From: Oikopleura dioica
Lineage: Eukaryota > Animalia > Chordata
Direction: 5' to 3'
Assembly (NCBI GenBank): GCA_907165135.1
Contig: OU015569.1
Span: 6,200,001 to 6,264,000 of the forward strand
Length of the DNA stretch: 64,000 nt
Shown here: one piece after another, positions 5,531 to 8,019 of the stretch
Layout of the letters: each line of letters opens with the position of its first letter
Numbering within the stretch: position 1 is the stretch's first letter
Made by a program: the position numbers and the translations under genes
Notes under the pieces: model-generated
Told to the model about the DNA's origin: nothing
Database searches by the model: none
Seen by the model: only the letters and a program-made list of their open reading frames with translations

Positions 5531-8019
5531 TTATCCTCAGCAGCCGGAGTTTTTGAGCTCAGCTCCAGAGCGTTTTGTTATGGATAAATCTGTGAACCAC
5601 TCAGCGTTGACAGGGTGGATACCAACTGTTCCATCAAGAATCGCTAGGATCAAGTTAATATCTCTACTTTATTTTGCGACGTTACTTTTGGTAAGTCCAG
5701 CCTTCATAGCAGCAGAAAATCCCTGCATGACTTCGCCTGCGGTTGGCCCAACATAGTGGAGGCCGACAATAGGCTCATTTGGCTCATGACGAAGTGTGAT
5801 TGCCTTCATGTAGCAAAGATTGGCGTCTTTCTAAAGAACAAATGAATAAAGGTACCTGAATCCGAAGTTCGAACGAATTAGTAAAGAGCGAACTTACTCC
5901 AGCAAGCGTCCATTCCAGCGGCCAGAATTTTCGATGATAAACTTCAATATTATCTGCTCCAAATTTTTCTATCGCTTTTTCTTCCGAATAACCACAGCAA
6001 GAATATTCCAGCGGAGTGAAAACTGTAGTAGCAACTGTGTTATAGTCCATCTTCTCGACACCACCAGCATACATTCTTCGAGCTAGAGAAATAGCAAAAG
6101 GTGTCCTAAGTCTCGCTTAGTTACCTAAAAGTCGACCAGCTTGGATGGCGACAGGTGTAAGCTCAAGGCGATCTTTGAGGATGTCCCCGATAGCGTAAAC
6201 ATTTTCAATATTTGTTTCTTCGGCGTCATTGACGATAACTTTTCCGCTATCAGCTAACTCAACCTTGACGTTTTCGAGGCCAATGCCCTTGGTGCATGGG
6301 TCTCGCCCGATTGCCATCAGGACGGTTTTGTATTCATCCACGACTTGGGTACCGTCTTTCATGTCCATTGTAACCTAAAGAAAGACAGTTAACATTTACT
6401 CTCAATTTGAAAAATCTACCTTGAGCATTCCATTTTCAAGCTTTTCAATCGAGGACGGTGTGGCTGGTCGGATCATTTTGCAGCCAACCTCTTTCTCGAG
6501 ATGGCTACCAACAATATCGGCACACTGCTGGTCAAAGCCTCGCAAAAAAATTGATCGCACGCAAATGTCAACATCGAGGCCAACTCCTAGTAGCGAAATT
6601 AAAAAGTTAAAGCCCTTATTATTGAAGAAGTACCTTTCAAAAATCCAGCACACTCGAGCGCCACATAACTTGCACCGACGACGAGCGTTTTGCCTGGACA
6701 CTCTGTAAGCCAGAACAAATCATCAGAGCTGATTGCATGCTCAATTCCAGGAATATTTGGAAGGCGAGGACGCTCGCCAGTAGCAACGAGGATATTTTGA
6801 GTGGTCAGTTCTTCGACTTTGCCTCGCTTGTTTGTGCAGACGACGGTATGGTTGTCCTTAATCTCTCCGTAGCTGTTGAGATACTTGACGTTGTTGTCAC
6901 GAAGTTCAACTTTGTAACCCCAGTTCAGCGAGCCGATGTAATCGCCGACAGCCATTTGCATGTTTTCCCAACTGTGGTTAATTTTTTCGGGATCAATATT
7001 CCAGCCGAACTTTTTCGCATCGTGAATGGCTTCTCCAAGAAGGGCAGACTGGTGCATAAGTTTCTAAATTAACGGTTATTTCTAAAGAAAACACTCGTTG
7101 CTTACTTTTGGAATGCATCCAACGTTAACGCAAGTTCCGCCAAGACCCCAGCTGTTTCCAGCAGGTGAAGGCTTCACAAAGTCGAGGACGGCAACTTTTT
7201 TGCCGAGCTTTGCCGCCTCTTTTGATGCAGCTAGACCTCCAGATCCACCACCAATCACAACCAAGTCATAGTCGTAGCTGTGTGGTTCGGTAGCCTTTGC
7301 GTTAACTGATCTAAGATACAAAATATATTTCGTTTCACTATTAGATTAATTTTCAAAAGAAGTATGAAAAGCATTTCTTTAGTAAAACAATGATAAGTTC
7401 GTGACACCAGTGATGATTAACCTTTTGTTTTTTCCATATTCTTTTAGGGAGAACGATCTCTTTGGGACGTGTAGGGGGTCACTACCGGCGAGTCCCATAG
7501 TTCCAGCTACAGGAAGAAAAATCCTCCTGAGCCGAGGGAGGCGCATCATCTTAACGTAAACCATGATGACTTATCAACCGGAAATAAGAAATTAAATAAA
7601 ACCAAAACAGAGTATTGCGTATCAGTCCTAAAGGAAGAAGGTTGCCTTCATCATCGAGCTTGAGAGTATCATCACATCCACCAATATGCTTGCCATCGAT
7701 GAAGACATTTGGGACAGATCTCTGGCCGGTCATCTCTTTCAATAAGTCCTGGTAATTGGACATTTCAGTTTCAGAGTACTTTGCATGATTGATAAGATGA
7801 TGTAGTATTAATTGAAAAAATGAAAAACTCTCTCGATGTTGCGTCAATCAACCCTTCCTTGTTGAGTTCAACAGCATGATAAGGAATGAACCTAGACTTG
7901 AGTCTATCCTTGACTTTGTTGCAGAAGGGGCAGAAGGTTTTGGAGAACATGACAACCCTGTTCTCTTTTATAATGCCCTCTATGAGGGCCTTCGAGAGTG
8001 CCCCTGTTGCAGGAGGCAT
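5531..8019 (-). CDS. TXNRD3: Thioredoxin-glutathione reductase (Grx + TrxR selenoprotein)
   Basis: N-terminal Grx domain with FSKTFCPFC and [16 protein letters not shown]; FAD motif [12 protein letters not shown]; redox motif [12 protein letters not shown]; [11 protein letters not shown]; TTVFTPLEY. The C-terminus reads GGC TGC TGA GGA TAA = G-C-U-G-stop (5531-5545). Confidence 0.95.
7422..7549 (-). CDS. Putative alternative first exon of the TGR locus (mitochondrial-presequence-like)
   Basis: TAAG|ATGATG start, then [42 protein letters not shown], ending at AG|GTTAAT. It splices in frame to the acceptor at 7311-7312 ([17 protein letters not shown]). Confidence 0.6.

Follow-up and report, generated by a model that had tools for sequence, protein, structure and literature searches.

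The 64,000-nucleotide stretch of the Oikopleura dioica genome analyzed here (contig OU015569.1 of assembly GCA_907165135.1, forward-strand positions 6,200,001 to 6,264,000; hereafter the window, whose own numbering is used throughout) carries on its minus strand a compact gene whose introns measure 42 to 79 nt, apart from one of 322 nt that separates a glutaredoxin (Grx) part from a thioredoxin reductase (TrxR) part. This large intron, which holds a candidate alternative first exon, is the subject of the present text. As judged from its sequence, the gene is one for the selenoprotein thioredoxin-glutathione reductase (TGR), since it joins a Grx domain with the site CPFC to a TrxR module with the motifs GGGSGG and CVNVGC and to a C terminus reading Gly-Cys-UGA-Gly-stop. 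The CPFC of the Grx domain is a CxxC site, and both Grx exons match glutaredoxins and TGR chains in a PDB sequence search, in which the first common TrxR exon matches TrxR1 and TGR chains with an E value of 8e-31. The TrxR module is that of a class-I pyridine nucleotide-disulfide oxidoreductase, with GGGSGG as its flavin adenine dinucleotide site, CVNVGC as its redox center, and a dimerization domain; profile TIGR01438 matches it exon by exon (291, 217, and 77 bits) and PF02852 matches as well, each single exon scoring below the whole-protein cut-off. The last exon ends in GGC TGC TGA GGA TAA (5545-5531), where the in-frame TGA at 5539-5537 is the UGA for selenocysteine (Sec) and TAA at 5533-5531 the stop; the end is identical in L027, a relative's contig covering the 3' half of the gene.

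The exon map draws on contigs of the metatranscriptome X1 (51% of sampled words), mapped to positions 5000-8600, and on genomic contigs of relatives. Among the latter, L015 (3.5 kb, carrying the open reading frame [ORF] P0001), L016, and L028 (same lineage as L015) represent sister lineages, L017 comes from a more distant species (Tara Oceans assembly), and L024, L025, and L026 are partial contigs from further species. X1 contigs are incapable of showing RNA starts, and rare variants have been dropped from them. From the 5' to the 3' end of the gene, the features are as follows; a slash within a motif marks the cut.

8021-8022, minus: likely spliced-leader acceptor of the main mRNA, TTTAG then A, one base before the TGR ATG (sequence; kept in the sister lineage; AG/A rule, PMC6389100)
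7858-8019, minus: Grx exon 1, with ATG at 8019-8017 and CPFC (PDB search; 3' end set by the X1 joint 7858 to 7778)
7779-7857, minus: GA-AG intron within the Grx domain, 79 nt (X1 joint; missing from the sister lineage)
7628-7778, minus: Grx exon 2, ending ...GNLLPL, phase 1 (PDB alignment through LLPL; X1 joints on both sides)
7626-7627, minus: GA donor of the Grx-to-TrxR splice (X1 joint 7628 to 7305, ends CT..TC on the plus strand)
7550-7627, minus: intron part A, an outron, 5' leader, or retained segment (77% identity to L016; covered by the X1 contig 7475-7657)
7550-7551, minus: candidate internal spliced-leader acceptor, AG then A directly before ATGATG (sequence; kept in L015, L016, and L028)
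7422-7549, minus: candidate alternative first coding exon, 128 nt or 42 codons plus 2 nt, phase 2 (conservation, homologous ORF P0001, composition, partial X1 RNA)
7420-7421, minus: GT donor of the candidate exon (kept in L015, L016, and L028; similarity collapses just after it)
7313-7419, minus: intron part B (58% identity with 15 gap columns versus L016; without X1 RNA depth)
7306-7312, minus: tandem acceptor AG-ATC-AG, with AG1 at 7312-7311 and AG2 at 7307-7306 (use of AG2 by X1; frames by translation)
7106-7305, minus: first common TrxR exon, with GGGSGG and CVNVGC (PDB search; X1 joints)
5531-7063, minus: six further TrxR exons, 7063-6634, 6586-6420, 6374-6125, 6082-5898, 5830-5686, and 5643 onward (X1 joints, TIGR01438)

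Grx exon 2 has G7628 as its last base, after which the 322-nt intron opens with GA at 7627-7626. An X1 joint links 7628 to 7305 with GA..AG ends at a depth of 5.3 and places Grx and TrxR in one mRNA; the TGR form, its GA donor, and the use of the distal acceptor AG2 are thereby demonstrated, and the position that a preliminary description of this stretch had given for the donor is borne out. X1 contigs also show five small GT-AG introns among the TrxR exons and the GA-AG intron 7857-7779. The gene thus contains two introns of the GA-AG type, which is unusually common in O. dioica (PMC7072748). Some 20 nt around the GA donor 7627-7626 are identical in the sister lineages. A GC donor (GAAG/GCAACC) in place of GA was also considered and is ruled out by the X1 joint. 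At the site of the other GA-AG intron (7779-7857), the coding sequence of L015 (around 3035-3050), L016, and L028 is uninterrupted, and its local peptide differs slightly; the intron has been gained or lost between close lineages.

Inside the large intron, an AG at 7551-7550 stands directly before ATGATG at 7549-7544, from which a reading frame runs for 128 nt to G7422 and meets a GT at 7421-7420. When the four possible donor/acceptor pairings were translated locally, over short junction windows, two proved to be in frame, namely, the Grx exon with AG2 and the alternative exon with AG1. The Grx exon joined to AG1 gives a frameshift and a stop, and the alternative exon joined to AG2 an immediate stop, such that the 5-nt offset between the acceptors compensates for the exon phases 1 (Grx) and 2 (alternative). 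The preliminary description had pointed to an AG-preceded ATG, to an Arg/Leu-rich, acid-poor ORF ending at GT donor 7421, and to two AGs 5 nt apart that each match one exon phase; all of this is found on the minus strand at the positions it gave. It had also set its proposal against the segment being a constitutive internal exon spliced from the Grx exon. A cassette spliced from the Grx exon was rejected here, as it would be out of frame and stop after 22 codons.

The sequence TTAAG/A at 7551-7549 has the form of an O. dioica trans-splice site, which is an unpaired AG, usually followed by A (PMC6389100). Spliced-leader-bearing reads were not seen at the main TGR acceptor 8021-8022. TCTAGA, a male-specific core promoter motif of O. 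dioica (PMC6389100), is not present at this locus.

Comparison with L016 gives the following values, with differences at first, second, and third codon positions separated by slashes.

Alternative exon: 88.3% identity, no gaps, codon-position differences 4/3/8
Grx exon 2: 84% identity, no gaps, codon-position differences 3/1/18
TrxR exon 1: 80% identity, no gaps, codon-position differences 2/3/35
TrxR exon 2: 81% identity, 7 gap columns
Intron part A: 77% identity, 4 gap columns
Intron part B: 58% identity, 15 gap columns
Small intron (7106-7064): 54% identity, 12 gap columns

L015, L016, and L028 all retain the signals that would define the exon (ATGATG with the AG/A before it, the GT donor, and the pair of AGs); TAGATCAG is conserved along with them, and similarity collapses directly past the GT. 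Part A of the intron has conserved patches, namely, ATTTCCGGTT; AAGTCATCATG, which carries an upstream ATG in frame (7564-7562); and the TAA (7553-7551) that closes the Grx frame.

Such conservation might be that of a noncoding regulatory element, either one that enhances or silences splicing at the weak GA donor or a promoter or enhancer lying in the intron, in which case the ORF would be incidental and the RNA found over the block would stem from a retained intron or a precursor. Synonymous divergence is indeed unusually low, with 8 of 42 third positions changed compared with 35 of 66 in TrxR exon 1, and the substitutions are only weakly biased by codon position. Part A is conserved too (77%), the X1 contig that reaches the block (see below) extends into it from Grx exon 2 without a break, and an intron of 300 nt will not rarely contain a 20-codon ORF that closes with a GT. 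However, a regulatory element would leave it to coincidence that the 128-nt ORF is free of indels while both of its flanks carry them, that ATG, AG/A, and GT are all retained, and that relatives with unalignable DNA keep a phase-2 ORF together with the matching upstream AG. It would likewise not account for an AG 5 nt before the used acceptor, which is kept in six lineages and has a counterpart in none of the gene's other seven introns, nor for RNA depth over the first 75 nt of the exon but not over part B. We therefore regard a purely regulatory block as unlikely.

Among the relatives with unalignable DNA, L017 has the same layout, with the Grx exons followed by TTTAG/A-ATG. Its ORF comprises 20 codons, is basic with three Arg and no acidic residues, and ends at AG/GT in phase 2; the tandem acceptor reads TATAG/TAAAG/TT, and its first AG puts the ORF in frame with the TrxR exon. 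In the partial contig L024, the phase-2 frame is the only open one over the 25 codons available, is again basic without acidic residues, and ends at CAAAG/GTAAAA, some 50 nt before AAG/TCAAG. An AG-NNN-AG tandem acceptor is retained in six diverged lineages. L018, a distant GC-rich TGR gene, has a short Grx-TrxR intron without such an exon. In O. dioica itself, an AG within 10 nt before the acceptor occurs in 0 of the 7 other RNA-confirmed introns of the TGR gene. The arrangement of ORF and tandem AG is more than chance, because the ORF is conserved like an exon, the other seven introns lack an upstream AG, and the tandem has been kept in six lineages.

Two further features of L017 were observed along the way. 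At 1645-1680, the site matching the GA donor reads TT, and 18 nt upstream of it there is a canonical G/GTAAAC donor of unchanged phase, from which the Grx-TrxR junction of this species may lie six codons earlier. In addition, the intron between its candidate exon and the TrxR exon holds two copies of TCTAGAG (around 1849-1856 and 1957-1964, the second some 40 nt before the tandem acceptor), which also occur in L019-L021; given the role of TCTAGA in O. dioica as the male core promoter motif, L017 could conceivably have a third start, of testis type. In L019, a close relative of L017, an intron insertion (around 60-160) has inverted ends, GTTGTTACCCGAT... and ...ATCGGGTAACAAC, and looks like a small transposable element.

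A second X1 contig, at a depth of 3.5, extends from 7657 in Grx exon 2, crosses the GA donor and the AG/ATG without a break, and reaches 7475 in the middle of the candidate exon, of which the first 75 nt (7549-7475) are thus present in X1 RNA. The bin 7299-7419 has only the depth expected from its seven exon bases, and depth is zero both in the Grx intron and in the spacer that precedes the gene. Given this absence of depth from part B, the Grx intron, and the spacer, the X1 run is free of DNA contamination, its coverage is RNA, and intron part B is removed. RNA that includes part A and the exon's first 75 nt is present in fair abundance and lacks part B, which fits an exon whose downstream intron has been removed.

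The same contig would also be expected if the main alternative product of the gene were a free-standing glutaredoxin, made when the GA donor is skipped and the Grx frame runs on for 25 codons to the TAA at 7553-7551; the downstream ORF would then be translated little, not at all, or by reinitiation from a bicistronic RNA. The contig passes from Grx exon 2 beyond the GA donor to at least 7475 at about two-thirds of the depth of the spliced form, and the stop adjoins start codons in both lineages, as TAA-G-ATG here and as an ATGA overlap with an upstream ATG in L015 and L028. Yet the conserved ORF, its GT donor, and the phase-matched AG1 would be left unexplained, there is no AATAAA between 7627 and 7550, and the read-through tail is unconserved, with 3-nt and 1-nt indels shifting its frame between lineages. 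We give a free glutaredoxin as the main alternative product little probability; it would moreover be compatible with, rather than exclusive of, a Grx-less TrxR made from the same gene.

The peptide encoded by the candidate exon looks like a mitochondrial presequence in its composition. It is rich in Arg and Leu, its first 30 residues hold five positive charges and one negative charge, the first acidic residue comes at position 24, and four Arg lie among the first nine residues. The peptide is amphipathic, with a maximal helical hydrophobic moment of 0.61, and residues 31-34 form an R-3 type cleavage motif, RSF/S. The short presequence of this genome's dihydrolipoamide dehydrogenase (DLD) scores similarly. 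The exon might also encode the start of a Grx-less TrxR with another destination, in which the peptide would be an endoplasmic reticulum/secretory signal or a regulatory extension of a cytosolic isoform. The basic start, the stretch of some 13 mainly apolar residues after it, and the small-residue sequence AGS give it a resemblance to a signal peptide as well. Against this stand the four Arg in the first nine residues, the R-3 cleavage motif, and the L024 ORF, in which Arg and Ser/Thr are spread throughout; furthermore, the genome holds no other candidate for a mitochondrial enzyme, and no secretory-pathway role is known for an NADPH-dependent selenoprotein TrxR. Taken together, a nonmitochondrial peptide appears improbable.

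The genome-wide inventory of reductases bears on the need for such a form. The whole genome (64.3 Mb, 19 contigs) was searched exon by exon in six frames with profiles PF02852, PF07992, TIGR01438 (TGR), and TIGR01421 (glutathione reductase). Two loci of this enzyme class were found, the TGR gene and a locus on contig 4 that reads as DLD (C4:10548373-10549867); the remaining PF07992 matches are AIF-like, DPYD-like, and amine-oxidase-like. Neither a glutathione reductase nor a second TrxR was found genome-wide, within the sensitivity of this exon-by-exon six-frame search, which bears on the question raised in the preliminary description of whether the genome lacks a separate TXNRD2. Since no other TrxR or glutathione reductase was found, a mitochondrial thioredoxin system, if there is one, must obtain its reductase from the TGR locus. 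TGR and DLD are the only class-I disulfide reductases found; a free-living chordate is thus in a situation like the "linked" redox system known from parasitic flatworms (PMC2873472) and in part like that of insects (PMC11508645).

On this evidence, we consider it probable, at roughly 60%, that the single TGR gene makes two proteins, TGR and a Grx-less mitochondrial TrxR. The first form is built from Grx exons 1 and 2, joined through the GA-AG intron to AG2 by the observed splice, and is presumably cytosolic. The second would have 7549-7422 as its first coding exon, or would start at the conserved in-frame ATG at 7564, and its GT at 7421 would be spliced to AG1, 5 nt upstream of AG2. The product would be a TrxR without Grx domain but with a basic presequence, probably cleaved after RSF, that would direct it to mitochondria. 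As there is no glutathione reductase, mitochondrial glutathione disulfide (GSSG) would need to be reduced through thioredoxin, as in insects.

The 5' end of the second form could arise in three ways. The likeliest would be spliced-leader trans-splicing at the AG/A, in competition with cis-splicing of the same pre-mRNA, in which case the continuous X1 contig would represent the unprocessed outron. The second likeliest would be an internal start site in intron part A, possibly using the upstream ATG at 7564. Third, GT 7421 might serve as an alternative donor to GA 7627 and yield a bicistronic Grx/TrxR RNA, in which the Grx frame would stop at the TAA at 7553-7551, one base before the ATG. It is tempting to combine the first of these routes with the rest of the locus into an operon-like "gene within a gene," in which one pre-mRNA would give cytosolic TGR when cis-spliced from the GA donor and mitochondrial Grx-less TrxR when trans-spliced to the spliced leader inside the intron; the conserved 5-nt tandem acceptor would then be a frame adaptor, and one selenoprotein gene would run all thioredoxin and glutathione reduction. 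We offer this more specific picture only tentatively, as one possible version of the two-protein reading.

Several observations weigh against the two-protein reading. The joint 7422 to 7310 was not found among the X1 contig joints listed, nor was a leader or other loose end at 7549 found among the X1 rows listed. The sole X1 contig to reach the exon ends at 7475, and the 53 nt from 7474 to 7422 have no X1 depth; because this contig is unbroken from Grx exon 2 into the exon, an intron-retaining, bicistronic, or precursor RNA may lie behind it (7657-7475). Raw RNA-seq runs X19-X21, which carry the species label, show 90 to 99% identity and match only a few conserved blocks of 5000-8600; they come from a strongly diverged cryptic lineage and are therefore unsuited to testing splice forms of this assembly and uninformative on its junctions. 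Substitutions in the alternative exon are weakly biased to third codon positions (4/3/8), and its protein sequence diverges faster, and its silent sites more slowly, than those of the constitutive exons. With so weak a bias and so low a synonymous divergence, part of its conservation could be at the nucleotide level. Fast protein change with slow silent-site change is usual for presequences and alternative exons. The similarity of the peptide to those of L017 and L024 is too weak to prove homology and is at best suggestive, and mitochondrial targeting is something that we infer from the composition of the peptide and from the need for a second form.

Also on this side of the balance, no transcript-derived protein with the alternative N terminus turned up in a word search, a search of representatives, or a cluster look-up. 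The word search with the alternative-exon ORF returned the genomic ORF P0001 only, and those with TrxR exons 1 and 2 returned unspliced genomic ORFs only. A HMMER search of 1.84 billion representatives gave P0001 and low-complexity noise, and all cluster members are genomic ORFs. These blanks are weak, as queries were made exon by exon, protein length restricts the word search, and isoforms are masked by representatives. Exact alternative-exon patterns gave 0 matches in JGI metagenome contigs. The MERC unigene P0128 was set aside, as it looks chimeric, with a front half from another organism. The idea of the preliminary description that one locus yields two enzymes thus stands in part, with a favorable outcome for each component open to testing. 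The TGR splice form is real, and the candidate exon is conserved, keeps its phase, and has 75 nt in RNA; of the two junctions that it had contrasted, 7628 to 7305 is seen in X1 and 7422 to 7310 is not.

The 3' end of the gene carries two structural elements, both on the minus strand.

5507-5530, minus: hairpin with a perfect 9-bp stem, GCCCGTTAG / CTAACGGGC, starting 6 nt after the Sec UGA, past the true stop codon
5298-5343, minus: element resembling a Sec insertion sequence (SECIS), with AUGA at 5343-5340, helix II at 5338-5330 pairing with 5309-5301, AAA at 5327-5325, and GA at 5299-5298 (fold, conservation)

In L027, the hairpin has an identical stem and a different loop. The SECIS-like element was found manually, by its AUGA-12 nt-AAA...GA pattern, and is the sole alignable block of the 3' untranslated region in the sister lineage, where it shows one compensatory change (A5332-U5307 to U-A); an Rfam search for a SECIS gave no match at an E value of ≤1. 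On the 5' side, the upstream gene, a PI-PLC with a C2-like end (8088-8600, minus strand), carries a GC-AG intron at 8342-8429. The PI-PLC RNA contig stops near 8088, about 65 nt before the AG/A acceptor of TGR, an operon-like spacing.

Our full-text literature searches found no papers on Oikopleura TGR. The closest known system is that of flatworm TGR, where in Echinococcus granulosus and Schistosoma one gene gives mitochondrial and cytosolic variants (PMC2873472; Agorio et al. 2003 as cited there). There, too, a selenoprotein TGR is the organism's only thioredoxin/glutathione reductase, and its variants, one of which has a mitochondrial leader, stem from alternative 5' ends, with intron promoters and trans-splicing among the mechanisms. 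The flatworm leader exon, however, lies upstream of the Grx exon, and both variants keep the Grx domain. In Oikopleura, by contrast, the candidate leader exon is placed after the Grx part and before the TrxR part, would remove Grx, and needs the 5-nt tandem acceptor for its frames.

Human TXNRD1 offers a second parallel, with a Grx-containing form v3 (Grx-TR1) beside the major Grx-less TR1 (PMC3316567). As in the arrangement proposed here, the choice of 5' exon within one TrxR gene gives Grx-containing and Grx-less enzymes. In the human case, however, neither of the two is a mitochondrial enzyme, TXNRD2 and GSR are present as genes of their own, and it is the Grx form that is rare, whereas in Oikopleura the Grx form is the one confirmed by RNA. 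In insects (Drosophila, Anopheles), the cytosolic and mitochondrial isoforms of TrxR-1 differ at their N terminus, and the genomes lack glutathione reductase (PMC11508645). The likeness lies in alternative N termini from one gene and in the absence of glutathione reductase, with GSSG reduced via the thioredoxin system. The insect enzymes have no Grx domain and carry Cys in place of Sec, and Drosophila differs further in having a second TrxR gene. Tandem acceptors of the NAGNAG type are like the one described here in having a pair of AGs, separated by a few bases, at the same end of an intron. The Oikopleura spacing is 5 nt rather than 3, AG2 is the acceptor with RNA-supported use, and each AG fits one upstream exon, so the pair would act as a frame adaptor instead of inserting or removing a codon.

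If the two-protein reading is true, this would be the first case found of one gene giving both a Grx-containing cytosolic TGR and a Grx-less mitochondrial TrxR. It would be a compact natural case of cis- and trans-splicing in competition and of two exon phases reconciled by a tandem acceptor, and it would raise the question of how GSSG is reduced in Oikopleura mitochondria. Two switches known separately, between mitochondrial and cytosolic forms in flatworms and insects and between Grx and no Grx in mammalian TXNRD1, would be combined in one gene together with a frame-adapting tandem acceptor, and a free-living chordate would have dropped glutathione reductase and separate TrxR genes, as parasitic flatworms have.

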